From the NCBI GenBank assembly GCA_900088475.1, contig FLMG01003693.1, positions 1 to 57,970 of the forward strand: 57,970 bases of DNA, in the 5' to 3' direction. The DNA is from Hyphochytrium catenoides (taxonomy: Eukaryota; Protista; Hyphochytriomycota). Below, piece after piece: positions 10,597-48,870 of the stretch; the stretch's first letter is position 1; each line of letters starts with the position of its first letter. The notes beneath the pieces were generated by a model that had not been told where the DNA came from, did not search any database, and saw only the letters and a list, made by a program, of their open reading frames with translations. The position numbers and the translations under genes are program-made.

Positions 10597-11494
10597 GGAT
10601 ATGTCATTCTCCCGTCTCATCTTTAGAAACCTGTCTATAGCGGCTTCTGCTGTCATCAATTTGCCCAGTTCCGGGGTCATTCTTCTCTTACGTCTGACGC
10701 AAGCTTTGCCTCTTTAGGTTTCGATTAGAGGAGAGCTCGTGCTGCTTCGATCTCTATTGTTTCTAAATGACTGTGTGTCATCTCCTGTCATAGTTCTCTA
10801 AAAAGTTAAGAGGCAAAGCTGCTGATTTGGCAGGACTCTCTGTGAAGCTGTCGGTCAGCGTGGTCAGGCGTCAGCCTCCGATAGCGTAGTAGATTGGTAC
10901 GAATAGGACTGGTGTGTTGATGGCGAAGATGCGTGAAGAGATGATGGGCTCTAGAGAGAAGAAGTTGAAAAGGGGTTCTTGGTAAACATAATGTGCGCAC
11001 TTTGATACCATTTCTTCTCTTCCAGGCGCACCTTGTTTGGACACCCTCATCTGTGTTAGGGGCTCAATGGGGCAATTGACACTAATAAATGATCACAAAA
11101 CCCACCCATGCAATAGTGCGCACTCCTTGTTGTAAATAGCGTCATTCTATGGGCACCAGGGCGCTTGCCATGGCGGCAGGGCCTGCTTGCTGAAGCTTGT
11201 CTCCATTCTCCATGCAGTTCCAGTGATCTGTACAGTACATATGAATACACAGACGAACTGCCTTCGCCAAGGTGCAGCACCTGTCTTCGCCTCTTCACGT
11301 ACGTAAGGTGAAGCTTGTCAGGAGTATGACTCCGGGGAGTATATACACACAAGCTGGGGATTCATTCTAAGAGCTCAGCTAAACGACCTGTGTAAAGACC
11401 CCATTGCAAGGAAGGTCCTTTTGCGGCACACAGCTGCCTGCCCGTGGGAGGCTGGAGGGAGGGAAGGTGGTCAAGGGCTGCCACGGCCGCCAAG

Positions 11495-11916
11495 ATGTCA
11501 AGATTTGACAAAGCTCTGCCACTGCAGTACTTCATTCATCGAAGCAAGGTTCTTCAGCAATATCGCAAATTTTTGAGAATTGCACGACAGCTTGATGAAA
11601 GGGATGAGGTGGTGGCCAGAATTAGAGAGTCATACAAGCGTAATGTGCACGTGACCGACCATACTCGGCAAAAGGACTTGCTGGCTACCGGCCAAATGGA
11701 GGTGAGACCTATATTTACAAAGGGGCAAGTGCGTAAAAGTCTGACCATGTTCGACAGCTGGAGGGCCTAGAGTTTCTGGCGTCCGCCGCATCAGCACGCC
11801 CAGTGGCTGCTCCAAGTCCTGAAGCGGCCTCTGGAATTAGTCATGATGGGCGTGACGATGTGGATGTTGTTGGACGCCTTGGAAAGGGTTGGCCCTGGAG
11901 CAGGACGACCTCCTAG
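11495..11916 (+). CDS. LYR-motif mitochondrial protein, LYRM2-like
   Basis: LPLQYFIHRSKVLQQYRKFLRIARQL...IRESYKRN...LLATG. One intron (~11702-11757). C-terminal GRLGKGWPW. Confidence 0.8.
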
Positions 11917-12985: not shown

Positions 12986-14824
12986 ACTCTACCACCCACG
13001 AACGCAGACCGCTTGTAAGCCAGGTAGCGATGTCTGCTGTATCATCGTTGACAATGTCACTCCATGGATTATTGGGCCTAGTGGGTAGCAGATTTCTTAG
13101 CTAACAGGCAGCAACAAAGCTTGATTTCTCTGCGAGGCTTCTGGCTGTTGAAACGCGCCTGCACTTACTGGGAGCAGAGTGATCTGTGTCTAGGAGACCT
13201 GTCAACAGTTATGATAGACCACCTGGCACGTCAACAGAGGGCGGCGGCGGTGTGCACGGTATGAGTACTCATCACTTTGTGACGAGGATCGTCTGCTCTG
13301 CTTGTGCAAGTTGTACGATAGAGGAAGAATGATGAGAGAGCTGATGAGAGTGTGATTCGATACAGCGCTATCAAGAATGGCTCGGTCCGGATTCCCGAAG
13401 AAGGGAAATAATTATTAGGCTTTATTGTAAATCAGCTACATCTGCTGTCGCTATGCTGTTGTTCTGATGATGAGCTCACTCATCGACTCCATCATGCTCA
13501 TCAGATTGATCATCTCAGCATTCTCTCATTAGCGCAGTCGGACAGTGGAACGCTTAGCGCCATCCCTCTTGCATGCGGAGACGACAGGACGGACCAGATG
13601 CTGCTAGGAGTAGCTTATTGCTAATGCACAGAGTTCACCACCATGGCGATCGGCGAGCGGCTGCTTCCGCGACAGGAAGGGAAGCAGCATGGGAGGAAGG
13701 AAGTAGGTAGACTACAATGAATATTGAGTAGGGGCAAAAGGGAACTACTTACCTTTCGGTGGACCCGGACCCGAATCCCATCCTGGCTGACGGTTATCAG
13801 AGAATAGCTGCCTGCTGGCGGATGCTGGAATGAGGTGCTCAGCGTTAGCCGAAACATCCTTCTTGCGTCTCAGAGAAGTCTGCCTAGAAGAATCTGTGGG
13901 CATTGTCGATTGCATTCCCTTCTCTATTTCAATGCTTCACTTCGTTCACAATCTGCGTTTCTGCAAAAGGACCTACCCTATCTATCGGGGCTTTCTAGTT
14001 ACCAGCTTCTTACTCACCTATCCAAATGCTGATAGGATCTTTAATTGCCTCGATCGATGGTGGAGTCAAGATTACCTGTCCTGGCTACTAACTTTTTAGA
14101 TGATTTGAGTTCCTTGAAGCGCAGAGTATGGTTCAGATGATGGCTCGATCTGGGGTCGCTACCCCGGCTGGCTTCTATTTACATTACACCTATCATCTCT
14201 TCCCTCCCGGAGAAGGCTGACCATGCCCATGTCTTGAGCGATTGTCTACCATGCATAACTGCATTGCTATGACTATATCGAATCCCGCCGCAAAGTACAG
14301 CTAAGCGCGGTTAGGGCTGTCAACTCACTCTCCTCTACAAGTTCAATTCACCCTCAGCTGACCATAAGAAGGGTTTTAGAGCCATTGTAGGTGTCACCTT
14401 CCTACTGGAGAAGGATTGGGCCACTTAGCTGATCAAAGATCTATGAGATTCCAAGCGTCGTAGCAAGGCGCAGACTAGAAGAGGTTCTGATCATCCTTCA
14501 CAGCAAGGGGTAACAATATGAAGGGTGAGCAACAGGTAGTAGGCTCACTCGACCAGTTTATTACCATCAAAGCCTCCACTCCGCCTCCTCCATGTCACTC
14601 AGGCTGGCCGAGTGGCATCATTGTGAGGAGAAGAAGCATTGTCTGACATGGTCAGTAGGGCAAGAATTTGAATTAAAATAGCGCTCTGCTCATTGTAGAG
14701 ATAATGCTCCCAAACTGCATAGGTAATAGCATACTAATACCCTTAGGTTTCTGCATCTCGATACCTGCCTGTGGTACCATGAACAGCAACGACGGCGCTC
14801 ACGGCAAGAAGGGCTACCAACTTA

Positions 14825-16096
14825 CTAGTTTATGCGAGAGAAGAACTTTCCAAGATAAGTTAGCAGATACAGAGAGATGAGGAGTTGATAGCAAGTGAGT
14901 AAATGGGATGTGGTCATGGGAGCTGAGCAACTTTTCTCTCCGAAGTCCCCATCATCATGGGGTCCTGAAGGTACCGATGGCGGCAGAGGCGACGGATCCT
15001 GACCGGTAGCGTACCAAATCGTTGGGACCGCCCATAGAGAAGTCCCAGGAGAGTTATCTGGGTCATCTCTATCAATTGACTCAAAGACCACTCGACACCC
15101 TCCTTTAGGTTCCCATCCAGGAGCGCCATCATACCACTTAGGTTGGTTCGTGACTGCGACCGCTTGAGGAGGAACGTCGTTGACACTTTTATCTCCATCG
15201 TTTCTTTTCCATTTGGTAGCAAGCAAAGTGCCTTCACGACCACTGTAGAGGATGTATTTTCCATCGGGAGAAAAGCTTACATCCGTCCCGTTGGCAACTA
15301 CCTGCGGGGACTGCAGAGAGGCATCGGCTATTCTCGACCTACCACCGGATTGCCCAGGGGAGAGAACCGCTATGTACACGCTCCATTCATCAGGCGATTT
15401 TAGTGTTCTCCCCTGGTATGCTAACACTCCGGCATCCGTAGGTGAAAAGCAGGGTTGTCTAGCGTCAATGACTTCAGGATCCGTGAGCTTCTTAACCTCC
15501 TTTTTCTGGCCGCTAGACCCCGGACCGGCATCGACGATACCTATAACACTAGGGCTATCCTCATCGCTCCCGCTAGAATGTACCTCAAAGGACAGAGTAG
15601 AGTTATCGCACGAGAACGTAGGCTCAAAGTAGACATCGCTGTTACTTCCCGGTGTTAGCCGTTCTTCTTCTGGAACTGATGCCCCCGATTTCTCATCACT
15701 ACTCATTGAGGAAGTTGATGATATACCATAAACCTGCTCGCCAGCAGCGTCAGAAGTGCCTTCCCTTGTTCCAGCGTAGGTAATTAAGCTCTGCTTCAGA
15801 TTCCAGGGGCAGTTGCCTGGCAGATTGATGTTGATATCACCTCTCTTGGTTACTTTCTCAAGCTTCTTTGTGGCTAACTCCATCCTCCATATCTCTGAAG
15901 TTCCCTTGTTATAACCGCTCCGGAATCGCGTGAAGTAGAGAAAAGCTCCATCTGGAGAAATAGATGGATTCTGTAAAGAGCCATCCAAGTTGATGTCAAA
16001 CTTACAAGCGCCATCCCCGCGCGTGGTCTGACCGCAGCCTTTCGTTAGTTCTGAGACTGGACAGCGCTGATCGGCCCCCGTCAAACCTGCTGCCAT
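14825..16096 (-). CDS. TolB-like (PD40) beta-propeller with C-terminal hydrophobic tail; intronless
   Basis: Repeated PD40-type motifs NPSISPDG, EPTFSCDN, QPCFSPTD, VSFSPDGKYILYS, APGWEPKG. Pro-rich linker, then LLTCYQLLISLYLLTYL. Confidence 0.8.
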   Translation of the reverse strand: MAAGLTGADQRCPVSELTKGCGQTTRGDGACKFDINLDGSLQNPSISPDGAFLYFTRFRSGYNKGTSEIWRMELATKKLEKVTKRGDININLPGNCPWNLKQSLITYAGTREGTSDAAGEQVYGISSTSSMSSDEKSGASVPEEERLTPGSNSDVYFEPTFSCDNSTLSFEVHSSGSDEDSPSVIGIVDAGPGSSGQKKEVKKLTDPEVIDARQPCFSPTDAGVLAYQGRTLKSPDEWSVYIAVLSPGQSGGRSRIADASLQSPQVVANGTDVSFSPDGKYILYSGREGTLLATKWKRNDGDKSVNDVPPQAVAVTNQPKWYDGAPGWEPKGGCRVVFESIDRDDPDNSPGTSLWAVPTIWYATGQDPSPLPPSVPSGPHDDGDFGEKSCSAPMTTSHLLTCYQLLISLYLLTYLGKFFSRIN

Positions 16097-18072
16097 TTTT
16101 CTTGCACTCCTTTCCTTTCTCTTTGGGACGCTTTAGAAAGAACCAAAACAGCTAAGTGTTGTTGACCCGGTGGCAGCATCGACCAGTGCCAAGGAATTGG
16201 CCCATCAAAAAGTGGCGATTCCAGGCAGTGGAGATCTCGACTACGGAACGGAGATGTCAGTTCCAAGAAAAGGCTTTATCTTCTTTCACTCCTCATTGAA
16301 GCTGCTCTTCTGCCCTGTCGCACAACATGAACGGTGCTTGAAACGTTGGTGTCAACCCGTTGCACTTGTGCATGCTGCCCAGGTAACAAGATCCTGCTAT
16401 TTTTGAAAAAAACGTCTACTCCAACGATTCTTCATCCCGTCCGAGAAAATCACGAGGTACCAAAGAAAACAGCAGAGAATTCTGTCTCACAAGAGAGTTC
16501 ACACTTTCAACAAGAGTAAAAGAATATCAATAGCTACTAGTAAGGGAACTTTGCCACTGGCATCCGTGACGGCAGTCTCGCATTGTGCATGAAGATCCAG
16601 TGGACTGGGCCCAAGAACTATAAAAACTATAAGAAGCTCTCACTAGTGCAGAATAATGGAGAACGGCAAAGAGATTCATCGTCCGGGCTCGACAAAGAGG
16701 TGAGGTAGTAAGAAACAGGGGCGAGCAGGAAACCAGGGGCAGCAGGGGCAGACAGAATGTGGGATTAATTTTTGGCCTCGACAACACTTTCCTGCTATCT
16801 TCGTGGCGCCAGATTATTGTTTGTAGGAGTAGAGACCTATGCTAATAACGGACAAGGTTCTAGAACAGAGCCTTCCCTTCTAACTTTCTTGTGCTCTATC
16901 CTCTTTTCTGCAGGAAGATAGAATATTTGGACCGAAGCTCTTCACTGTCTTCATATAAATATAAGATAGAGTAAAAACAGTGTGACAAAGAGTAGTGCAA
17001 GACACTGGTCCTAAATAGAGCTCCCTGATCCTATTTTTATATATTGTTATTATTATTACAGGTAGCTCTGAACAGTTTGGGGGTTGTTCTACTTCTTTCT
17101 ATTTCCTATTTCTATCTGTCTTCGTAGCTGTGTGAGTGACGGACTGACCGACTGACACACTGCTGCAGCTGCCCCCAGTTCCCGCCTACATAAAAACGGT
17201 TTGTCATCCCAGGGAGTAGGACATTCGGCTTTTTATTTCTGTGCACAATACAATCTTATAGCCAAGGTTTGTGCCAAGTGGTTGGGGCGACGATGTGTCA
17301 GGCGCCCTGCTTGGCCGTAGTTCTTATTCTGGACCGGACCTGCGAGAACGAGTAATAAGCTCCAAGCTTGCATGGTGTACGAAGCCTTTCTGTCAGGTGT
17401 CAGGGTGCTCAATGCTTTCAGTGACAAGAAGGTCAGGTCAGGACAAAGCCAATGCACAGTCTAACTTCGCCGCCATCATTGCCCACCAGCGGCCCCATCA
17501 CCTCGTTGGCGCCCGCATCTTCTTTCCTACTTTGTTCTATGTACTGTACCCTTGAAGAGTAGAGGGAGTGATGCGAGTCTTGACACTTGTGAAGGCGGAT
17601 ACTGCTCTGATTTTAGTAAATATCTATGCGCCTCGTTGTCCGACCGCCCACAACCGTTCTTGCCTGGCTATTGATGCTGATCAATGATCAGCAACAGCAA
17701 AACTCTGTCTGTTTATATAGAAGGTTAATAGATGATACGATCGTTTGGGCCCAGCTGCTGCAGATAGCAGATAAAGAGACCAAACTTTGGAGACAAAGTC
17801 CAACTCTCAGTCGCCATAGACAATGCACCAAGACTTTGGGTGGGTAAGATACTCAAGTAGTATGCAGCTTGATTGCTGGTCTCTACCGGCCTTGACATAG
17901 TACGAGTGGATTTTGTCTTTAAGAAGTAATGCATGGCGGCCCCCACATGTTCTCATCTGGAAGTGCCCTGTCCTAGTCAGGGACCTGCCTCACTATCAAT
18001 TCTTCATTATCAGATTGGCCACCTAGCCCTCACACTCAAGCATCGGAAGAAAATACCCTGGTTCGCTGAGTC

Positions 18073-20586
18073 ATGAAGCCTGTCTCCTTGAAGAATGTTG
18101 CTTGTGCAGTCAGCATGCTTGTGCTACTGTGCGAGCCATTGGCGCTGGTGAGGGGTCAGACCGCCCCTAAATGTAAGGCCAACGAAGAGCTTCACAAAGT
18201 CAAGATCTATAGAGCTAGCGACAGAAAGCCTTCGGGCAAAAAGGCGAGCGTCTGCGTGAAGGAGAATGGCGACCTATGCGAGTACGAGTTGGTTGGCCCT
18301 TGTCCTCCTGCACAGAATGGGCTGCCGTACGGTTCTACTTGCGGAGAGATCGATTTCGACTCTCACGACCACGGATGTATCGAAGTCGCAGCTCCAACAC
18401 CTGCTCCGACACCGCCGTCCTTTCCTCCAGCTCCATCTCTACCTCCTGCCACTTCGAATCCTATTGACATTCCAACATGCAATGGTGGTCCTTGCTGCGT
18501 CGCTTTACCTCGCGGCGCCTCTATCGTCACACCATCCGGACTCTTCCAAGACTGGGCCATCAAGGCCCGTGTGGGTCCAGCTTACTTGACCACATATGAG
18601 GGTGCGATAGATGCAGGCTCCATCGCAACTGTGAAAAAGCTTCAGGACCAGGGTGTGACGGTGATTGAGCTTGACACTGAGTTCTCCTATTATATGAACG
18701 ACACCGAATACGCAGACCTTGTCCAATCTACTAAGGAAGTTGCAAGCTACATCCACACTCAAGGCCTGAAGATGGTCGTGTACTTTCCGGCAGGTGAAGT
18801 GATCACGAAGCAAGCTATCGGAGTCAACAAGGGAAAGACGATTTATGATCATCACCCGGATTGGGTCCAGCTTGATCTTGATGGCAAGACTCCAAACGTC
18901 TTCTATGGTGATAAAGTCTTCTGGATTGAAAAGGATGAGCAGAGTGCTTGGATGAATTTCAACTCTGGCTTTAGAGACTACTTCACCAAGCGGGTCGTAG
19001 CCTTGGCAAACGCCGAAGTGGATGGACTTTGGATGGACGTGCCGCTCTACAACGAAATCATTTCTCTTTGGACAGATGCATCCCCCAGCGCAGCACAAGC
19101 TTTCACTGCGGACACCGGGCTGACGGTACCTAAAAAGCCTGATTGGCAAGATAAGAACTTTAGGGTGTGGCTCTCTTGGAGACATAAGAATATCAACAAA
19201 TTCATCACTGACGTCTGTGCCGCCGCTAGAGGTGTAAACCCTAACTTCCTCTGTATCATTGAGACTGTCACGATGGACTATTACTACGCCAGGCGAGCAG
19301 GGCTGGATGGCGCTTCGCTGCTTGCAGACGGTGTTACCCATGTTTGGGAGGTGGATGTGGTCAGCTTGGACAATAGCATGCGGACGGCATATGAAGACGA
19401 TTGGGTCTCTCTCATTGGGATGTACAAGTACTCTCGGGCTGCAAGCTATCCTTACCCTGCATGGGCCTTTTCCTACGGTGCTAAGGAGGATGACGCTCGC
19501 CATGTGATGTCCGTAGTACTGGCCACGGGTTGCAATGTTTATGAGGTCAAGTCCCCAAAGAAAGAGGGCTCTGTTAGCGAGGCGATGAGGGGCAAGATGT
19601 ATGCTTGGATTAAGACGCATGAAGACCGCATGTACAGATCAAAAAGCATCGCGAAAGTTGGTCTCTTCCACTCAAGCGAGACTAGAGATTATGTCTTTGG
19701 ACCTTCTGAAGGCAATGGCCTTCTTTGCACCGTTAAGCCGCCTTCTGCTGATAAGGGCTGGTGGGCCTATGGACCCGAAGACTCTTGCTACACTAAAGAA
19801 TGGCTTGGCGAATACCGCGGCGTGATGAAGGCCCTACTTCACGCTCATATTCCTTTCGACGTCATTACGAGTCCAAGAATGAGCACCATTTCCCTAAGCC
19901 AGTACGGAACAATCTACTTGCCCAACACGCAGGCGCTAACAGACGAGCAGGCTGCAGCTATCAGAACCTACGTGAAGAGCGGCGGAAATCTTGTCGTCAC
20001 GGGTCCTAAGCCGGCAGCCCTCGACCTCTATGGCTCTCTTCGGGACGAGCTTGCTATTAGCGACATCCTTGGCTTTGGGATGGCTGCAATCCCTTCTTCA
20101 AAGGTCAATGCCATTGAAGGCGGTGGCAAAGTTTTTTACCACCAGGATTACCTTGGCTGGAGGTATCTTAACAAGACTTCCGATACTGCCGCTGCACAGA
20201 CGCTTACATCTCCATCTGGAGTCACTATGTCCTTCTTTAGCACCAACGCCGACCGTAGAGTCCACTTCGAAGCCAAAGCTTTGGAGGAGTGGAAAGAGGT
20301 TCACTTGCATATGATCAACTACATTGGCGTCAATGGGAAATACCAGAAAGTCAAGACTTCCTTCAAGGTTGATATCGATCTTCACCTTTTAGCTGCGGCT
20401 TTGCCAAGTCATCCACAAGGACTCACTCTCCAACAAGTTGCCGTTATCTCTCCTGACACATCGTTCTCATGCACAGTGGGAGATGGCGGATACACCCCAG
20501 CCTTTTCTTTCTCTCAGTCCTTACTTAGTGTACAGATTCAGGACTTGGACATGTACCAGGTTCTTGTCATCAAGTATGCCTCGTAA
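18073..20586 (+). CDS. Secreted glycoside hydrolase-like protein (TIM-barrel GH-like domain + beta-galactosidase trimerisation/GAT1-like domain) with Cys-rich N-terminal module; intronless
   Basis: Signal peptide; Cys module GPCPPAQNGLPYGSTC...HGC; PTPAPTPP linker; IHTQGLKMVVY, HHPDWVQ, VDGLWMDVP, FRVWLSWR; then LLHAHIPFDVI...LSQYGTIYLPN...IRTYVKSGGNLVVTG. Confidence 0.85.
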   Translation: MKPVSLKNVACAVSMLVLLCEPLALVRGQTAPKCKANEELHKVKIYRASDRKPSGKKASVCVKENGDLCEYELVGPCPPAQNGLPYGSTCGEIDFDSHDHGCIEVAAPTPAPTPPSFPPAPSLPPATSNPIDIPTCNGGPCCVALPRGASIVTPSGLFQDWAIKARVGPAYLTTYEGAIDAGSIATVKKLQDQGVTVIELDTEFSYYMNDTEYADLVQSTKEVASYIHTQGLKMVVYFPAGEVITKQAIGVNKGKTIYDHHPDWVQLDLDGKTPNVFYGDKVFWIEKDEQSAWMNFNSGFRDYFTKRVVALANAEVDGLWMDVPLYNEIISLWTDASPSAAQAFTADTGLTVPKKPDWQDKNFRVWLSWRHKNINKFITDVCAAARGVNPNFLCIIETVTMDYYYARRAGLDGASLLADGVTHVWEVDVVSLDNSMRTAYEDDWVSLIGMYKYSRAASYPYPAWAFSYGAKEDDARHVMSVVLATGCNVYEVKSPKKEGSVSEAMRGKMYAWIKTHEDRMYRSKSIAKVGLFHSSETRDYVFGPSEGNGLLCTVKPPSADKGWWAYGPEDSCYTKEWLGEYRGVMKALLHAHIPFDVITSPRMSTISLSQYGTIYLPNTQALTDEQAAAIRTYVKSGGNLVVTGPKPAALDLYGSLRDELAISDILGFGMAAIPSSKVNAIEGGGKVFYHQDYLGWRYLNKTSDTAAAQTLTSPSGVTMSFFSTNADRRVHFEAKALEEWKEVHLHMINYIGVNGKYQKVKTSFKVDIDLHLLAAALPSHPQGLTLQQVAVISPDTSFSCTVGDGGYTPAFSFSQSLLSVQIQDLDMYQVLVIKYAS

Positions 20587-21861
20587 GGTAGTCATCAAGG
20601 GCCCTAGGTAGCCTCAGTGTAAGGTCGTCTGCTCAGGCAAACTAATAGAAGCGAATGATCCCTACAAAGTTTATACTGACGTTAGCCTCTCAAGAGGGAC
20701 ACAGAAGAACGATATGGACCATGGGCCAATGACTATCCAAGATAAAGACCTGTTTGCCGTCTGCATGCACCAACCCACTTCTGTTACATCCCGTGGATAA
20801 CTATAAGCAAGAAGCGGTTGGACTACCACTTAAGGTACTGTCAAATGCATTGAGGCAGCCATATCACTTGCCAATGGCTCCATGTCAGACATCGGTCGCT
20901 GCCAAAGACTAAGCCAACTTTGCACTAACATTTAGCAGTAAGGCCACCTTGGTTAACAAACCATCAGTGTTCAGTCCTGTGCCTACTTGTCTGAAGCAGT
21001 CCTTCCGAGCGAGAGAAGGATTGCGATAATTTAATACACCGCTGACCGGGCTTGGCCTCCACTACGATTAATTGCCTCTTCCCTTCTAAATGACACCTCT
21101 CGTCACGCCTAGCTGCCAGGGTTTGTTACACAGGAGAGAGGCATCCAGTCATCTGTTGAAGCTCACGTCACAAATGCCCAGCTTCACATCTAGAATGAGA
21201 TTTGGTTCTTTCTAGGCAATGATACTTCCCAGTATACTGTGTCATTGTAACGCTATATGCTGCGTGCGATGCCTGAACAAAGTGGCGATGTTTCTGGTAC
21301 AAGTGACTCTTCCTCCTTTGCTGCGTTCCTATGACAAGGGCATGGCGCCTTAGACGACCTTGATCAGTGTTCAGATGTTCAGAAGCAGAAACTATGACAA
21401 ATGCAGAGCTCTGAGAAGTGTGAGACGGCGCCGAACTCAGTCAGATCAACCTTTGCGAGAGCCTCTAAAGGCTGTTCCTGCGCCTCACACAGGCAAAAGA
21501 GATGTGCATGCATCATCATCAGCTGTCAGATAACAGTACTGTACAAGTACTGTACGGCTTCCAAATTTGACGCGGTCATTCATCTCCTCTCAGGAATAAC
21601 AACTGTATATTGGCATAATATTCCCAATGTTTCACATGTGGAGGAACCGAAACAATTCTCAGCTTTTCAGATCATGAGAATTCTAATTTTTCGCGCGCTT
21701 TTTTCCCTCTCTCCTCCCTCCACAACTTCCACGACCGAACCTCCTCTCCAAAGGCCACACCTCTCTCTTGGCAACAAACACTACTACGGCTTGTGCTTTG
21801 TAGAAGTAATTCTACTGATACCGCATGTCGTATTACATCTCAACAAACACCAAGGACCGTT

Positions 21862-22805: not shown

Positions 22806-24027
22806 CTAGACCGTACAGTCTGGTTTTTCGTCTCTCATGGTGTCCATTGCTGATTCCCACTCCTTGTAGCGAGCAGCTCTTTCCAGTATTCCCTCCTCAT
22901 CTTCATCCCATACAATGGACAATCCTGAGATCCCATATTTACCGAACTCGAGCTCCTGGCGCTGATGGCCCTGCTCTGAGGAGGAGTGGTGATTCTTCTC
23001 CTTTGCCCAATGTCGTTTGTGCCGCCGGTTCGCANNNNNNNNNNNNNNNNNNNNNNNNNNNNNNNNNNNNNNNNNNNNNNNNNNNNNNCATCGATCACAT
23101 CGCGGCGCAGATAAAACCTAATGCTTCGAGACTTCGTGTTCAATGGGCTGTGCAAACAGAAGAGTCATGGCGTTAAGCAATGCTTTACAGTCTGAGCTGG
23201 AAGCGAACTCTGCACACCTTTCTCTATCAATATGGGGCAAGTGCTTGAGATGCGCATTTGTCAGGAGAAAGAACTCCTTTGCATCGGACCGTGATATCAG
23301 TAAATACTTCTTCCTCTGTCTCTCACAAAACTCGCACTATCCACATGAGAGAGATAGAAGTAATAAGGAGGCCAGTTAGAGAATGCCACATGGAATGCCG
23401 GGATGTGCTTACAAGGCGAATACTGAGTAGTTCAAAAATGTACTTGGTAGGACGTTTGCATTCCACACAGCAAATGCTTCTCCAGAGTAAATAGTTATCT
23501 CTCAGACTCTCATCACTGAGGCGGACAAAGCCGTATCTGTCGTAGAGAGTGGACCACAATACGTCACTGCTGGCTTCTTTAAGGTTTGACCTGAAAGGAC
23601 GTAACGTAGTCATAGCACGACAGCACATGACAAGTCAGTTGGTTCTCAGGAGATAAACGGCCGCAGCTAGAGCATGCTCTTACTTGCAAGATGCTGAAAA
23701 TGAGCCGATATCTTCCAATGGCAAAAGTTTTAGAACTATGAGCATAGCTTCAGAGGAGACAGAGTGAAGATTAGCTGCAGAATTGTGCCCTCCAGATACC
23801 GTGGAATTGGCATCATTGACATTCAGCGACCCCGTAGGGTGAGAGGCAGATGAGTTGGGTGGACCTTCGTCGTCGTCAAAGAATCCATTGCTTGAGTAGC
23901 CGCTGCTTTCGTCGTCTGACGGTGGCCACTCAGGAAGGGGGTTTGGCTGGAGCAGCTGTAGAAGGCTGTCATTATGCCGCTTTACGCGTGCCTTCCATGA
24001 CTTCCTAACTGACTCTTTCCGCCTCAT
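22806..24027 (-). CDS. F-box protein with XPA-like Zn finger and XPA_C-like domain (crosses N-gap 23035-23088)
   Basis: F-box: VSSEAMLIVLKLLPLEDIGSFSASCK...ASSDVLWSTLY. Then CVECKRPTKYIFELLSIRL-CEFCERQRKKYLLISRSDAKEFFLLTNAHLKHLPHI...IRFYLRRDV. Confidence 0.7.
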
Positions 24028-31102: not shown

Positions 31103-33211
31103 ATGGCAGCAGAGGCTGAGACCTTCGCCTTCTCCGCTGATATCAATCAGCTTCTTTCCCTTATCATCAACACTTTCTACAGCAACAAGGACATCTTCCT
31201 CCGTGAACTTATCAGCAACGCCTCGGATGCCCTTGACAAGATCAGATATGCAGCCCTCACGGACCCTTCTCTCCTGGAGACTGAGAAGGAGTTGGAGATT
31301 CGCCTCATTCCTGACAAGGCCAATGGCACCCTTACCATTGAGGACACTGGTATTGGTATGACCAAGGCTGACCTCATCAACAACCTCGGAACTATTGCCA
31401 AGTCTGGCACCAAGGCTTTCATGGAGGCACTCCAAGCTGGTGCTGACATCAGCATGATTGGTCAGTTCGGTGTCGGTTTCTACTCCGCATACCTTGTGGC
31501 TGATAGGGTCACCGTTCACTCTAAGCACAACGATGACGAGCAGCACGTCTGGGAGTCCGCAGCTGGTGGCTCTTTCACTGTTACTCTCGACAAGGAGAGT
31601 GAGCCCCTTACCCGCGGCACCCGCATTGTCCTTAAGTTGAAGGAGGACATGCTTGACTACCTTGAGGAAAGGAGGATCAAGGATCTTGTCAAGAAACACT
31701 CCGAGTTCATTGGCTTCCCCATCAAGCTTTGGGTAGAGAAGACTACCGAAAAGGAAGTCTCTGATGATGAGGAGGAAGAGGAGGCTGATGCTGACAAGCC
31801 CAAGGTAGAGGACGTTACGGAGGAAGATGAGAAGAAGCCTAAGAAGAAGAAGACCATCAAGGAGGTTACCCACGAATGGGTCCACCTCAATGATCAGAAG
31901 CCAATCTGGATGCGTAAGGCTGAGGACGTCACCACTGAGGAATACGCTGCCTTTTACAAGTCTATCACAAACGACTGGGAGGAGCACCTTGCAGTCAAGC
32001 ACTTCTCTGTGGAGGGACAGCTTGAATTCAAGGCTCTACTCTTCTGCCCAAAGCGTGCTCCTTTCGACATGTTTGAGAGCACCAACAAGAAGAAGCTCAA
32101 CAATATCAAACTCTATGTCCGCAGAGTGTTCATCATGGACAACTGTGAGGATTTGATGCCTGAGTTCCTTTCCTTCATCAAGGGTGTTGTCGACTCTGAG
32201 GATCTTCCACTCAACATCTCCCGTGAGACCCTGCAGCAGAACAAGATCCTTCGCGTCATCAAGAAGAACTTGGTAAAGAAGTGCATTGAGATGTTCAATG
32301 AGCTCGCTGAGGATGCTGACAAGTATAAGAAGTTCTATGAGGCCTTTGCCAAGAACATCAAGCTTGGCATCCACGAAGACTCTACCAACAGGGCAAAGCT
32401 TGCTAAGCTCCTGCGTTACCACTCTACCAAATCTGGTGAGGACATGGTCAGCCTGGATGACTACATTGGTCGCATGAAGGAGAACCAGCCTGGTATCTAC
32501 TACATCACTGGTGAGAGCCGCAAGGCTGTGGAGAACTCTCCTTTCCTTGAGAAGCTGAAGAAGAAGGGCTATGAGGTGCTTTTCATGGTGGACCCAATTG
32601 ACGAGTTCGCAGTCCAGCAGCTCAAGGAGTATGAGGACAAGAAGCTCATCTGCGCTACCAAGGAGGGTCTCAAGCTTGAGGATGATGAGGAGGAGAAGAA
32701 GGCGTTCGAGGAAGCGAAGGCAGCTTCTGAGGGTCTCTGCAAGCTGGTCAAGGAGGTCTTGGATGACAAGGTTGATAAGGTCGTTGTCTCGGCACGTATC
32801 GTTGACTCACCTTGTGTCCTGGTCACCGGCGAGTATGGCTGGTCCGCTAACATGGAGAGAATCATGAAGGCTCAGGCTCTTCGCGACCCATCTCAGTCCA
32901 TGTACATGAGCTCCAAGAAGACCATGGAGATCAACCCAACTCACCCTATTATCACTGCCCTTCGTGAGAAGGCCAATGCTGACAAGGGTGACAAGACCGT
33001 CAAGGACCTTATCTGGCTGCTCTATGACACCTCTTTGTTAACCTCTGGTTTCTCCCTCGACGAGCCCACTACTTTTGCCAACCGCATCCACCGCCTTATC
33101 AAGCTTGGTCTCAGCATTGACGATGATGTAGAAGTAGATGATAAGATCGATGATCTTCCTCCTCTTGAGGAGGCAGGCATGGAGGAGTCCACCATGGAGG
33201 AGGTTGACTAA
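31103..33211 (+). CDS. HSP90: Cytosolic heat shock protein 90, intronless
   Basis: [68 protein letters not shown]-terminal MEEVD. Strong codon bias. Confidence 0.99.
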
Positions 33212-47154: not shown

Positions 47155-48870
47155 ATGGAGACGATGTCAGATGTGGAGAGAAAGCTAGAGTCTCTCTGCC
47201 GATGACAGATGAAACCTCAGTTCTTGTTTACCGCCGTAGCTTTAGTAGCTTAAAGTACCTAGCCACGTCCACTATCTCCCTCATCTTGCATCAGCCATTC
47301 CATAGGAACACGATACTTCTATGAATGCACCTATAGAGCTCTTTCATGGAAGTTATAAGGCGTAGCAGAGTTAGCTGGCCCCCAGTCTACATTGACTTTG
47401 CAGGTGATTACCCACACGTGGAAGTGAGGATGCTTTTCTTCATAAGCCCTAAATAGCTGCATCAGTGAAGGGTCTTAAGGATCGGATAGGCACTACTCTC
47501 AACATTATGCAGGACATAGACGCTGAAACTTCACACTCTACATCAAGCCCTTCACGAGAAACCGAACCGTCAGCCGGTACGAGATCATCATCCCAGATCG
47601 CAGTCTCCCAGAGCCAGCAAGGATCTATGGCTGAGGGACCTAGCATGCGGGAAACTACTTTGGAAGAACCAAGTGGTATGTCAACTAAGCGTACTGGCTC
47701 TGCGTCAGCGCAAGCTGAAAAGAGAAAAGCGTTAGAAGTGAAGAACAAACAGAAAGACATGCCCGGTGCTGTTGTGGCGTTAGGAACGCGGACCACAAAT
47801 GACGGCCATGTGACTGGGAATGCCAACGATTCCAGCACATCCAAGAATCGAAAAGAGCTCCAGAGCGAAAAAGAGCTTAACGGAGCCATTGACTTAGCAT
47901 TATCAGGGTCAGACTCGGATGAACTTTCAGGCTCTGAGACCGGTGACCAGGGTCGAAGACAAAAGGAAAAAGTGCCACTCATCCAAGAAGAAGACACCTT
48001 GGTAGCAGAAATTGGTATGGATCTCGAAGATGCTATCATTGCAAAGGCAAGTGCTGCCGAAAGAGACCAAGTACGCGATCTTGGAAGAGACCCAGANNNN
48101 NNNNNNNNNNGACACCCGATCCGGAGGTAGCGGAAACTGCCAAGGAGAAGCACAAGGCCAAGGAGGGACTTCGGCTACGTACCAAGCCTTCAGATGTTTC
48201 GGCCTCTAGTGCGCCAACAACCACTAATGTCTGCACCTGTTGTGCACTTCCCATCGGAACTGCTGACCGATTCTGGCAAGTTCCTGGCAAAGGCAAGACG
48301 CACCTAGTGCATGAAGTGTGTCTGCTGTGGACTCCCGACATACCCATTCGAGACACTGTGACTCAGTTCTTAGTGATGGAATACGCGGACGTTATTCAAG
48401 AATCTGCCAAGAGATCTCGTAGAATCAAGTGCAATCGCTGTGACACTAAAGGGGCAGGCATCGGGTGTGCGCACACCAATTGCAGGCGGTCTTTCCACTT
48501 CAGCTGTATTCAGCCAGAAGATGGGGAGCTTCTTTTCTCTCCTGACTGCGTATGCGTGAACGAGGAGATCTCTGTTCTTCGCCTTTTCTTCTGCGATAAG
48601 CACCGCGTTCTCCCAGTGAAGGAGACTGACAAAGGACCAGTGAATATTCTGGCGAACTGGAAGCGCTATTCATCAGCAATTCAGAAGAGGTTGGCGACGT
48701 ACTTCTATATCATCGAGAAGGTAAAGCAAGTCAACAAGACCTCTGGGAGAAATATTGTTGAGATTAAATGGCTCGGGTGGGAGGACTCTGAGAGCACTTG
48801 GGAAGACTACGAGTGCTTTCAGTCCAAGAAGACCTTAGAACGCTATTTGAAACGGAGTATAGGGAAGTAA
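47155..48870 (+). CDS. Extended PHD (zf-HC5HC2H) + C-terminal chromodomain protein (start uncertain; N-gap 48097-48110)
   Basis: CTCC...VHEVCLLWTPDI...IKCNRCDTKGAGIGCAHTNCRRSFHFSC...FCDKH, then FYIIEKV...IKWLGWEDSESTWEDYECF. Confidence 0.85.

Follow-up and report, generated by a model that had tools for sequence, protein, structure and literature searches.

A divergent pair of intronless bacterial-type genes, encoding a putative secreted glycan hydrolase and a TolB-like propeller, in the genome of Hyphochytrium catenoides

Two long intronless open reading frames (ORFs) stand head to head in a contig of Hyphochytrium catenoides (FLMG01003693.1, assembly GCA_900088475.1; the window referred to below is the whole 57,970-nucleotide stretch analysed). 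They raise the question of whether bacterial genes that belong together have settled in a eukaryotic genome and, if so, what they might do there. A preliminary description, made from the sequence alone, had read them as a co-acquired propeller and hydrolase acting on an extracellular polysaccharide. The layout that it gave is confirmed in coordinates and strands: the ORFs diverge from a shared spacer of 1976 bp. In DNA of approximately 49% GC, unbroken runs of 423 and 837 codons are far beyond chance.

14825 to 16096, minus strand: propeller ORF, intronless, 423 aa; stand-alone PD40 (TolB-like) beta-propeller of bacterial type
16097 to 18072, no strand: shared intergenic region, 1976 bp; putative bidirectional promoter region
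18073 to 20586, plus strand: hydrolase ORF, intronless, 837 aa; glycoside-hydrolase-like, three-domain, of an uncharacterised bacterial family

The intergenic region is free of repeats of 25 bp or longer and is dense in SNPs and indels between the haplotypes. Exons of eukaryote type (PDEase, PHD/chromo and LYR) are present elsewhere in the window, and the statement that nearly all of its genes are intron-rich needs qualifying, as HSP90 (31103-33211, 702 aa) is a third intronless ORF. No Pfam-domain ORFs were found in the flanks at 12.3-14.8 kb and 20.6-24.7 kb, which is consistent with their being gene-poor, as described earlier, but falls short of proof.

The window HSP90 is 84-85% identical to oomycete HSP90, indicating that the host is a eukaryote, namely a stramenopile near the oomycetes. 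Contamination or a chimeric scaffold might have placed bacterial genes in this assembly: both ORFs lack introns and have bacterial relatives, and runs of N interrupt the scaffold at 23035-23088, 48097-48110 and 52561-52576. However, positions 1 to 23034 are free of gaps. Contigs of three DNA runs (possibly the same data that lie behind the assembly) tile 14700-20650 with equal depth across the genes and spacer, and resolve into two haplotypes with SNPs and indels between them, as for a diploid; contamination is unlikely for this reason. The pattern fits the diploid, SNP-rich genome described for H. catenoides (PMC5795050). GC content and GC3 are host-like, unlike those of high-GC Actinomycetota, and the hydrolase bears a predicted signal peptide of eukaryotic type together with a Pro/Thr linker. 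Its orthologue in the chytrid Obelidium has at least two spliceosomal introns and lies amid eukaryotic genes on an 83-kb contig. An artefact is extremely improbable, and the assembly chimera against which the preliminary description had warned was not borne out: the nuclear genome of this diploid stramenopile does carry the two ORFs as resident genes of bacterial type.

The hydrolase can be divided as follows, the two catalytic residues being proposed from model strands and invariant alignment columns.

18073 to 18156, plus strand: predicted eukaryotic signal peptide (residues 1-28; cleavage site inferred)
18157 to 18540, plus strand: Cys-rich module, Pro/Thr linker and second Cys cluster (residues 29-156; lineage-specific)
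18160 to 18405, plus strand: metatranscriptome-covered stretch (246-nt soil contig, run X7; 3 differences)
18544 to 19640, plus strand: (beta/alpha)8 barrel, putative catalytic domain (residues ~158-522)
19036 to 19038, plus strand: candidate catalytic Asp322, at the end of beta4
19348 to 19350, plus strand: candidate catalytic Glu426, at the end of beta6
19645 to 20225, plus strand: alpha/beta domain resembling GH42M and the second domain of GlmA (residues ~525-717)
20230 to 20583, plus strand: C-terminal beta-sandwich (residues ~720-837; from the structure model)

The predicted fold consists of a TIM barrel, a GH42M-like domain and a beta-sandwich, with Z scores of 22-24 to GH42, GH96, GH151 and GH164. 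The GH-like barrel and trimerisation domain proposed earlier are thus clear in the model, though the Pfam scores for GHL6, GHL10, Glyco_hydro_42M and GLMA_2nd are all under their cut-offs and no Pfam or NCBIfam family was found above cut-off for the catalytic domain. Residues ~525-717 match Pfam GLMA_2nd, Glyco_hydro_42M and DUF4350, all below cut-off, and the family profile matches domain 2 of PDB beta-galactosidases and GlmA (6jow, E 7.5e-10). An hhalign comparison with GH114 domains lays D322 over the Asp of the 'FDGxxxD' motif, in a weak match (prob 39%, E 3e-4). The Glu/Glu pair of GH42-type enzymes is absent, because beta7 has no acidic residue.

The signal peptide, Cys module and linker noted earlier are all present: the signal-peptide-like segment reaches a KD19 of 2.04 at residues 8-26, six Cys lie in residues 34-102 and the Pro/Thr linker occupies residues 106-130. 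These N-terminal additions are missing in every homologue, bacterial or Obelidium, and the bacterial N-termini are of Tat/lipoprotein type. Residues 29-156 are modelled with pLDDT below 50, and no match to them was found in Pfam at E up to 10 or in the Atlas above 0.53. In alignment A1, an insertion of 8-10 residues after 'IDL' is common to the window protein and that of Obelidium (P0001) and occurs in none of the 21 bacterial rows. The hydrolase keeps 87 of 99 positions conserved in bacteria, its allelic differences are 12 synonymous against 8 nonsynonymous (P 4e-4 to 2e-3), and its codon use correlates with that of HSP90 (r 0.66). The soil metatranscriptome contig, the one piece of expression evidence, hints that the gene is transcribed in nature, with DNA carry-over as a possible source.

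Three features of the propeller gene and its upstream region bear on its state.

15026 to 16039, minus strand: propeller domain (residues ~20-357; AlphaFold model m02d8990338bf, high pLDDT)
14834 to 14914, minus strand: C-terminal helix, the 'hydrophobic tail' (residues 395-421; predicted helix)
17340 to 17373, minus strand: candidate signal-peptide-like mini-exon MQAWSLLLVLAG, putatively splicable in frame onto the propeller ORF

Its earlier assignment to the TolB/PD40 propellers holds, with a Pfam PD40 score of 39.4 bits (cut-off 20.9) and a predicted fold closest, among PDB structures, to TolB propellers (E 3.4e-10, 15% identity). In the model, the propeller is followed by a disordered linker (364-394) and then by the C-terminal helix, which was found in no homologue. 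The tail described as hydrophobic does exist as a predicted helix, but its hydrophobicity is only moderate (KD19 max 1.27); a weak membrane anchor, an extension free of constraint and read-through into non-coding sequence are all possible readings of it. No signal peptide was found on the ORF as read, so that the propeller as modelled would be cytosolic or tail-anchored, apart from the secreted enzyme. Within the intergenic region, MQAWSLLLVLAG is the only ATG followed by a strongly hydrophobic stretch, and in-frame GT...AG options are available for it (e.g. donor 17339 to acceptor 16038, with CTAAC before the acceptor).

It is conceivable that only the hydrolase works, the propeller ORF being a decaying or functionless foreign remnant outside any glycan system. 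The lack of a signal peptide, unlike the signal or lipoprotein N-termini of its bacterial relatives, would agree with this, as would the longest branch in the PD40 tree (2.8 changes per site), a GC3 of 0.48 (about genome background) and a low correlation of codon use with host genes (r 0.13-0.35). Of 52 positions with a conservation of 90% or more among bacterial relatives, twelve have been lost, and 4/5 listed allelic differences are nonsynonymous. Nevertheless, the 423-codon ORF is unbroken in both haplotypes, the remaining 40 conserved positions (77%) and every invariant motif (GYN, NLPG, EP, RQP, YDGAP and FES) are retained, and the propeller is modelled with confidence. Three of the four nonsynonymous differences fall in the C-tail, outside the propeller (all three listed in codons 385-422 are of this kind), and an upstream signal-peptide-like exon could exist. 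On balance, we regard decay of the propeller gene as unlikely.

In bacteria, the two families proved to be genomic neighbours. In 22 of 90 loci, from about seven lineages, the hydrolase homologue has a PD40 homologue no more than 1 kb away, and 23 of the 27 PD40 matches in the flanks of the loci are within that distance (P 1e-18). These neighbours are small stand-alone propellers, as is the one in the window. This linkage of the propeller and hydrolase families in bacteria is new. The hydrolase family also recurs in pel-type exopolysaccharide loci (pelD-E-F-G, DUF2194): PelG (E 3e-85), PelF, PelD-like, PelE-like and DUF2194 genes surround it in L067, L070, L074, L079, L081, L089 and L090, with a GH114 gene (E 1.7e-78) adjoining the hydrolase gene in L090. 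In the closest bacterial relatives of the propeller, the PD40 part is joined to polysaccharide-degrading domains of GH114/GH191 or beta-helix type, with PD40-GH114 fusions in P0190, P0191, P0052 and P0213. In ~60 of the 90 loci, pel genes and PD40 neighbours are both absent.

Among 5.8 billion proteins searched, the hydrolase has a single eukaryotic homologue, that of Obelidium (57% identity); the others are bacterial and at most 44% identical. The window and Obelidium sequences group with a support of 100 and are sister (99) to a 39-row Actinomycetota/metagenome clade. Because this eukaryotic clade is sister to the bacterial one and not nested inside it, the donor lineage is unsampled. The propeller search returned 312 matches, the named ones all bacterial, with relatives that are bacterial or metagenomic at 28-40% identity. 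Both families are mainly prokaryotic and both genes of bacterial origin, as had been proposed, and no broad vertical distribution among eukaryotes was seen. The hydrolase probably reached eukaryotes from the sister lineage of a Streptomycetaceae-rich clade; its presence in a chytrid fungus as well would reflect either one eukaryote-eukaryote transfer or uptake on two occasions from a single, unsampled donor lineage.

The proposal that both genes were acquired in one event fares less well. In a careful PD40 tree, the window propeller belongs to one subfamily (100/98) and the propellers adjoining the nearest bacterial relatives of the hydrolase to another, and forcing the two together costs 29.8 lnL (AU p 0.055, no rejection at 0.05). 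The tree disfavours a single transfer, although the placement is unsure because the branch is very long, and we put arrival in the same event at slightly below an even chance. The genes might instead have come at different times from different bacterial donors, the hydrolase perhaps through another eukaryote, and have become adjacent later, by build-up of foreign genes in permissive gene-poor DNA or by selected co-regulation. Such a history would account for the named relatives (Actinomycetota for the hydrolase; Chloroflexota, Proteobacteria and Bacteroidota for the propeller subfamily), for the strong contrast in codon adaptation and branch length, and for Obelidium carrying the hydrolase alone (no propeller was found in its 18-kb locus or in protein searches). 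The window gene order and orientation are also unmatched in any bacterial locus. Yet chance adjacency of two families that are linked in bacteria is very improbable, the hydrolase donor is unsampled, and the same propeller subfamily adjoins the hydrolase family in L050 (557 bp) and shares a pel cluster with it in L070 and L074 (6.6-6.7 kb). Separate acquisition is possible, though we consider it somewhat doubtful.

Taken together, the locus is probably best explained as a bacterial-type secreted glycan hydrolase with an accessory propeller, resident in a stramenopile. The hydrolase would be secreted through its eukaryotic signal peptide and may be a retaining enzyme acting on an extracellular alpha-linked polysaccharide, with Asp322 as nucleophile and Glu426 as acid/base. 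That its substrate is some extracellular polysaccharide, as suggested in the preliminary description, is very probable, and the bacterial contexts (pel-type loci, the adjacent GH114 gene and the PD40-GH114 fusions) point there. The propeller has perhaps an even chance of being an accessory module of the same pathway that binds the substrate or a partner. Pel is an alpha-1,4 GalNAc/GalN polymer, and GH114, GH191, GH135 and GH166 cut Pel and galactosaminogalactan via an Asp/Glu pair (PMC7890745, PMC12054363, PMC9135694). The bacterial linkage, the pel loci and the GH114 fusions make functional pairing on a polymer of this kind plausible. The leading candidate substrate, which we advance tentatively, at not quite even chances, is a cationic polymer of alpha-1,4-GalNAc/GalN, for instance the Pel of bacteria or the galactosaminogalactan of fungi; no pel biosynthesis genes were found in the window. 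For a saprotrophic osmotroph, the pair might serve in the breakdown of biofilm matrix for access or food, or in remodelling of the organism's own polymer.

There is also a considerable, if lesser than even, chance that the pair is real and its substrate of another type (e.g. a beta-galactan, a fucoside, dextran, an agarose-like polymer or a peptidoglycan-derived glycan), the pel link marking a subset of a functionally diverse family. The top folds are GH42 beta-galactosidases, GH96 alpha-agarase, GH151 alpha-L-fucosidase, GH164 beta-mannosidase and GH35, so that beta-acting families (GH42, GH164, GH35) are mixed with alpha-acting ones (GH151, GH96, GH66). There are the weak Pfam matches to GHL6 and GHL10, and some family members are named 'alpha-amylase family protein' at NCBI. 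A pel-type gene lies within 10 kb of the hydrolase in 14/90 loci, and in none of the ~30 from Streptomycetaceae. Nonetheless, pel loci with the hydrolase family span at least six phyla and include L089 and L090 of the eukaryotic genes' sister clade, the GH114 adjacency and PD40-GH114 fusions independently indicate the same polymer class, and an Asp (beta4)/Glu (beta6) arrangement with no beta7 Glu argues against GH42-type beta-galactosidase chemistry.

Several known systems resemble parts of this locus. The endo-alpha-1,4-galactosaminidases PelA (GH166), Ega3 (GH114), Sph3 (GH135) and GH191 are comparable in that hydrolase relatives lie in pel-type loci, propeller relatives are fused to PF03537 domains, and a (beta/alpha)8 barrel has a conserved Asp where beta4 ends, with a Glu further along, in line with the Asp/Glu pairs listed in PMC12054363. 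However, the hydrolase has no PF03537 match and its profile-profile similarity is weak (prob 39%); they are single barrels of ~250-300 aa, whereas it spans ~700 aa with two extra domains. The three-domain glycosidases GH42, GH164, GH151 and archaeal GH35 (GlmA) arrange barrel, GH42M-type domain and beta-sandwich in the same way along the chain (Z 22-24 over ~540 residues; Foldseek E 2e-23 to 6tvk), and domain 2 is recognisable by sequence in the hydrolase. Identity to these enzymes is only 9-15%, and the clan GH-A nucleophile position on beta7 is non-acidic in the hydrolase family. TolB, the Tol-Pal periplasmic protein, shares the PD40-repeat beta-propeller and provides the best PDB fold matches. 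In contrast to TolB, the window propeller has no N-terminal alpha/beta domain and scores 26 bits against the NCBIfam TolB equivalog (cut-off 343), and its relatives are beside or fused with polysaccharide-degrading domains, not in tol-pal operons.

Kominek and colleagues reportedly described, in 2019, a bacterial siderophore operon that moved into Wickerhamiella/Starmerella yeasts. There, as here, adjacent bacterial-type genes belong to families that are operon neighbours in bacteria; the window genes differ in being divergent, in not being co-linear with any bacterial locus and in having gene trees that point to no common donor. The acquired secreted CAZymes of oomycetes and other osmotrophs (Richards et al. 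2011; Savory et al. 2015, PMC4447370; PMC13345962) are similar in being bacterial-type intronless secreted enzymes and in the sharing of a gene between a pseudofungus and a fungus of similar lifestyle. The 2026 osmotrophy study (PMC13345962) counts 16 transfers from Fungi to Pseudofungi, with Chytridiomycota as the source of 6.5; term searches turned up no mention of the hydrolase family in these papers, nor of PD40, TolB, Obelidium or glycoside hydrolases in PMC13345962. Unlike those CAZymes, the window hydrolase adjoins a second bacterial-type gene, and the families of the two are neighbours in bacteria.

As the preliminary description had reported, the window contains two long intronless ORFs in head-to-head arrangement, separated by a spacer of 1976 bp. 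The features considered here are as follows:

11444-11770, plus strand: Complex1_LYR ORF (E 5e-8); upstream of the pair, no recognisable eukaryotic coding piece lies nearer
14825-16096, minus strand: propeller ORF, uninterrupted, 423 aa
17340-17373, minus strand: signal-peptide-like mini-ORF 'MQAWSLLLVLAG', followed by GT and joinable in frame to the propeller ORF
18073-20586, plus strand: hydrolase ORF, uninterrupted, 837 aa

The pair is a physical part of the eukaryotic genome and neither an artefact nor contamination, as determined by read depth, haplotypes, base composition and assembly continuity. Contigs from three DNA runs cover positions 14700-20650, with even depth over both genes and the spacer, and represent two allelic forms that differ by SNPs in both genes and by SNPs and indels in the spacer. 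The window has a GC content of about 49% and short N gaps, none of which falls between positions 1 and 23034. These two features and the two haplotypes agree with the published Hyphochytrium catenoides genome (PMC5795050). GC and GC3 of the pair (GC3 0.48 and 0.55) are host-like; the closest bacterial relatives have GC3 values above 0.9. An assembly chimera, raised as a possible objection when the pair was first described, is opposed by these observations. The allelic differences were sampled as the 40 best supported: those listed in the hydrolase comprise 12 synonymous and 8 nonsynonymous changes (P 4e-4 to 2e-3, against a chance expectation of 23-27% synonymous), and those in the propeller comprise 1 synonymous and 4 nonsynonymous changes, with 3 of the 4 falling in the C-terminal tail.

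Eukaryotic coding sequence elsewhere in the window includes exons of a class I cyclic-nucleotide phosphodiesterase, a PHD/chromo protein and the LYR protein. A third intronless gene encodes HSP90 as a single ORF of 702 aa (31103-33211, plus strand), so that the statement that nearly all genes of the window are intron-rich has at least one exception beyond the pair. This HSP90 shares 84-85% identity with oomycete HSP90 and 79-80% with the HSP90 of other stramenopiles, placing the host among the stramenopiles near the oomycetes. Neither Pfam domains in the flanking ORFs (12.0-14.8 kb and 20.6-24.7 kb) nor repeats or transposon ends bordering the pair were found.

Among 5.8 billion proteins, one eukaryotic relative of the hydrolase was identified: a hypothetical protein of the chytrid Obelidium mucronatum (57% identity). 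All remaining relatives are bacterial or prokaryote-type metagenome proteins with 32-44% identity; these protein searches detect relatives through shared words or patterns. Queried with the hydrolase protein alone, a scan of metagenomes gave no match, and a repeat with a three-sequence alignment recovered bacterial-type relatives only (44% identity or less), such that neither scan yielded a relative closer than that of Obelidium. In a tree of 113 rows (111 of them bacterial; LG+C20, quick search), the window and Obelidium hydrolases form a clade with a support of 100, which is sister (99) to a 39-row Actinomycetota/metagenome clade of Streptomycetaceae, one Pseudonocardiaceae genome and high-GC metagenome contigs. 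The eukaryotic clade is safe despite the quick search because its members share 57-60% identity, as opposed to 44% or less with any bacterial protein. A C-terminal-domain insertion common to both members is missing from 21 of 21 aligned bacterial proteins, and the window hydrolase retains 87 of the 99 positions conserved in at least 90% of bacterial sequences. The bacterial origin originally proposed for this gene is thus borne out by its phylogeny: judged by these relationships, it is a gene transferred from bacteria to eukaryotes, among which its distribution appears patchy in these searches. Either it entered eukaryotes once and subsequently passed between stramenopile and chytrid, or it was taken up twice from one unsampled donor lineage.

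The Obelidium gene (L001:9830-12221) is surrounded by eukaryotic genes on a contig of 83 kb and is interrupted by at least two introns, about 47-56 bp long. Its gene model (P0001) is truncated at the N-terminus, as homology to window residues 136-192 extends upstream of the annotated start. The C-terminal tail is Thr-rich and hydrophobic, resembling a GPI-anchor signal.

Pfam matches to the window hydrolase (GHL6, GHL10, Glyco_hydro_42M and GLMA_2nd) are all below threshold, with the middle-domain model Glyco_hydro_42M reaching 23.2 bits where 25.8 are required; the Glyco_hydro_42 catalytic-domain model gave no match in the Pfam search. The predicted structure, which is of high pLDDT from residue 158, consists of a (beta/alpha)8 barrel, a GH42M-type alpha/beta domain and a beta-sandwich. 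Its fold matches are GH42, GH96, GH151, GH164 and archaeal GH35 enzymes (Z 18-24, 9-15% identity); in a search of the PDB by sequence, solved structures were matched by the middle domain only. These results, together with the Pfam PD40 match of the propeller, uphold the initial domain assignments in substance. A literature search on GHL6 (PF14871) yielded nothing of use.

In the model, invariant acidic residues are located at the ends of barrel strands: Asp322 after beta4, Glu397 at beta5 and Glu426 at beta6. In GH42 beta-galactosidases, as in clan GH-A generally, the catalytic glutamates lie at the ends of beta4 and beta7. In the hydrolase, beta4 is followed by an aspartate, and the predicted beta7 (residues 463-466, 'AWAF') by no invariant acidic residue, making GH42-type chemistry unlikely; a GH42-type beta-galactosidase mechanism was considered and rejected for want of an acidic residue on beta7 of this model. 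A search with PF03537 at E-values up to 0.1 gave no Pfam match to the hydrolase. In hhalign, comparison of the hydrolase family with five PF03537 domains gave a weak match (probability 39%, E 3e-4) spanning beta2-beta4 only, in which Asp322 is paired with the aspartate of the GH114 'FDGxxxD' motif.

At its N-terminus, the hydrolase has a predicted eukaryote-type signal peptide in place of the bacterial Tat or lipoprotein leader (signal peptides were assessed from hydropathy alone). It has further acquired a Cys-rich module and a Pro/Thr linker, neither of which resembles anything known: there was no Pfam match to this region and no meaningful match in the Atlas. All three elements were noted when the gene was first described, and all three are lineage-specific. 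A 246-nt contig of soil metatranscriptome run X7, the sole RNA match obtained, is 98.8% identical (3 differences) to the Cys-rich module (positions 18160-18405), indicating that the organism or a close strain occurs in soil; this contig suggests that the hydrolase may be transcribed there.

The propeller matches Pfam PD40 (PF07676) with 39.4 bits (cut-off 20.9) and is confidently modelled as a beta-propeller over residues 20-357, approximately. Its best PDB fold matches are TolB propellers (E 3.4e-10). It is not itself TolB, which combines an N-terminal alpha/beta domain with a propeller: the window protein is a propeller alone and scores 26.2 bits with the TolB equivalog model TIGR02800, far below the cut-off of 343. 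A word-based search returned 44 relatives and an exhaustive search 312, with identities of 28-40% and no E-value below 1e-30. Most matches are unnamed; every named one is bacterial or from a prokaryote-type metagenome contig, in keeping with the bacterial type first assigned to the protein. The propeller sits on a very long branch of 2.8 changes per site. It retains 40 of 52 conserved positions and every invariant family motif.

Bacterial relatives of the propeller carry leaders, whereas the window protein as read has no signal peptide and is preceded by an in-frame stop just upstream. The mini-ORF at 17373-17340 may be a missed 5' exon: it could be joined in frame to several AG acceptors at 16038-16120, where the propeller ORF begins, which is one among many GT-AG pairings that could be drawn. 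At the other end of the protein, the C-terminal tail described as hydrophobic is predicted to form a helix behind a disordered linker; its hydrophobicity is weak (19-residue Kyte-Doolittle maximum of 1.27).

To address the question of whether the bacterial homologues of the two proteins are genomic neighbours, we sampled 90 bacterial hydrolase loci with up to 10 kb on each side. They are: in 22 of the 90 loci, the hydrolase gene has a PD40 homologue no more than 1 kb away, and the linked loci represent about seven lineages (Streptomycetaceae, where the genes are convergent, the L002/L088 group, a Pseudomonadota bin, Caldithrix, Haliangium, Elusimicrobia and Spirochaetes). Most linked loci belong to the sister clade of the eukaryotic hydrolases. 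Overall, 23 of the 27 PD40 matches in the flanks sit within 1 kb (P about 1e-18). In locus L067 the sole PD40 copy is within about 2 kb of the hydrolase gene, in L002 a second copy is 1.7 kb away, and two loci have a further copy 6.6-6.7 kb off in the same cluster. Among metagenomic relatives of the hydrolase, the nearest (P0002, 42% identity) has a gene that is directly followed by two PD40 genes. The contexts of two other top PD40 matches (L084 and L086) contain no glycan genes, and a Kitasatospora locus (L006) with TerD, a GH18 chitinase 3 kb away and unknowns is uninformative. A DUF6259 protein (730 aa) encoded beside a close PD40 relative in L098 was considered as a hydrolase relative because of its similar size and was rejected, having no similarity by BLASTP or hhalign. 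In the Pseudomonadota bin (L050:11935-14430, minus strand), the hydrolase-PD40 pair is directly followed by a gene for an 831-aa TIR + NB-ARC + TPR protein, likely a defence or signalling STAND NTPase unrelated to the pair.

Whether the two genes were acquired together was examined with a PD40 tree of 67 rows (LG+C20). This tree replaced a 150-row quick tree (LG+G4), which was set aside as its constrained version was 55 lnL better than the 'free' one. The PD40 proteins fall into two well-supported groups. The window propeller groups (100/98) with the top database matches, the distal copies of L070 and L074, and the L050 neighbour, whose gene is 557 bp from a hydrolase gene; the PD40 genes beside the hydrolase sister clade (L002, L088 and Streptomycetaceae) constitute the other group. 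Constraining the propeller into that other group is 29.8 lnL worse (AU p 0.055), a placement that is disfavoured but not firmly rejected by this test, and the long branch leaves any position uncertain.

The apparent donors of the two genes differ, which favours separate acquisitions. So does codon adaptation: codon use in the hydrolase correlates with that of HSP90 (r 0.66), whereas that of the propeller correlates poorly (r 0.13-0.35). Gene order points the same way, since bacterial PD40 genes lie downstream of the hydrolase gene (convergent or co-directional) or upstream and co-directional, whereas the window propeller is upstream and divergent, an order matched by no bacterial locus. Furthermore, no propeller was found near the Obelidium hydrolase gene or among Obelidium proteins within reach of our searches. 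Against separate events, it is very unlikely that chance brought together two foreign genes whose families are partnered in bacteria, and the true donor lineage is unsampled. For the co-acquisition originally proposed, adjacency of the two families in bacteria is borne out, but preservation of a donor's gene order and orientation is not. Acquisition of both genes in one event is a tentative reading, plausible though somewhat short of probable.

The bacterial loci also connect both families to genes for Pel, a partially de-N-acetylated alpha-1,4-GalNAc polymer (PMC9135694). Of the 90 loci, 14, drawn from at least six phyla, have a homologue of PelF, PelG or DUF2194 no more than 10 kb from the hydrolase gene. 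In Spirochaete loci, a DUF2194 gene, a TPR protein gene and a PD40 gene are found on one side of the hydrolase gene, with PelG (E 3e-85), PelF (DUF3492 + GT1), two pel-like genes and then a second PD40 gene on the other. Two pel-type loci belong to the sister clade of the eukaryotic hydrolases: L089, with the order pelD-like, pelE-like, pelF, pelG, hydrolase, and L090, in which a GH114 gene (E 1.7e-78) adjoins the hydrolase gene divergently and DUF2194, PelF and PelD-like genes are also present. On the propeller side, the two best relatives of the window protein (P0190 and P0191), as well as P0052 and P0213, are fused to PF03537 (GH114/GH191), and a right-handed beta-helix is fused to the propeller in two further relatives and adjoins P0026. 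The two sets of associations are:

L070:5288-19780, L074, L067, L081, L079, L089 and L090: hydrolase family (about 720 aa) in pel-type loci, with PelD-like, PelE-like, PelF, PelG, DUF2194 and, once, GH114
P0190, P0191, P0052 and P0213; P0196 and P0235; L100:528-3485: PD40 propellers of the window subfamily fused to or beside PF03537 or beta-helix domains

From these contexts, the bacterial hydrolase family has the appearance of an accessory enzyme of Pel-type systems that has yet to be described, and the fusions suggest that propellers of the window subfamily are a generic partner module of polysaccharide-degrading enzymes. Given their occurrence beside pel loci and GH114, the hydrolase family and the small PD40 propeller are candidates for making or breaking Pel-type polymers. 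The window hydrolase would be a secreted retaining glycosidase acting on an extracellular alpha-linked polymer, and the propeller an accessory binding module of the same pathway. Based on gene context and predicted structure, we infer that the likeliest substrate is a polymer of the Pel or galactosaminogalactan type; a substrate outside this class would accord with the fact that most bacterial loci have neither a pel nor a PD40 association, and with fold matches that span alpha- and beta-acting families.

Gene transfer is an accepted source of secreted enzymes in osmotrophic 'fungus-like' eukaryotes. The present case belongs to a well-documented kind, in which oomycetes and their relatives received secreted carbohydrate-active enzymes from bacteria and fungi (PMC4447370). 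A 2026 study counts 16 transfers from Fungi to Pseudofungi, several from chytrids; a search of it by terms gave no mention of the hydrolase family, Obelidium or PD40 (PMC13345962). New here are the specific hydrolase family, the adjoining second foreign gene from a bacterially partnered family, and the tie of both families, on the bacterial side, to pel loci and GH114 domains. In these searches, a single bacterial enzyme family turned up in exactly two eukaryotes, a stramenopile and a chytrid, which are distant from each other and alike in lifestyle. Because the second foreign gene adjoins the first and its family is a bacterial neighbour, the pair is a rare candidate for a functional module kept together in a eukaryote.

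The fullest version of this history, in which a two-gene module of a Pel locus was taken up whole and kept as a divergent pair on a shared promoter, with the hydrolase later exchanged between stramenopile and chytrid, is in our opinion unlikely. If true, unrelated chytrid-like saprotrophs would have gained a bacterial tool for dissolving the Pel or galactosaminogalactan matrix of biofilms, and the enzyme would represent a new glycoside hydrolase family for cationic polymers of this type. Enzymes acting on Pel-type polymers are of practical interest for biofilm dispersal. Current views are not overturned by this case, in which the functional claims derive from gene context and predicted structure.

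The Pel system itself has the synthesis genes pelD, pelE, pelF and pelG, which are present in the loci of only some bacterial relatives and absent from the window, where tblastn with PelF, PelG, DUF2194 and others gave no match. PelA of Gram-positive bacteria has a domain resembling the GH42 oligomerisation domain (PMC7890745). Families GH114, GH191, GH135 and GH166 cleave Pel and fungal galactosaminogalactan using an Asp nucleophile and a Glu acid/base (PMC12054363). In GH114 and GH191 these two residues lie at the C-terminal ends of barrel strands; Asp322 and Glu426 (or Glu397), invariant in the hydrolase family and at strand ends in its predicted model, may correspond to them.
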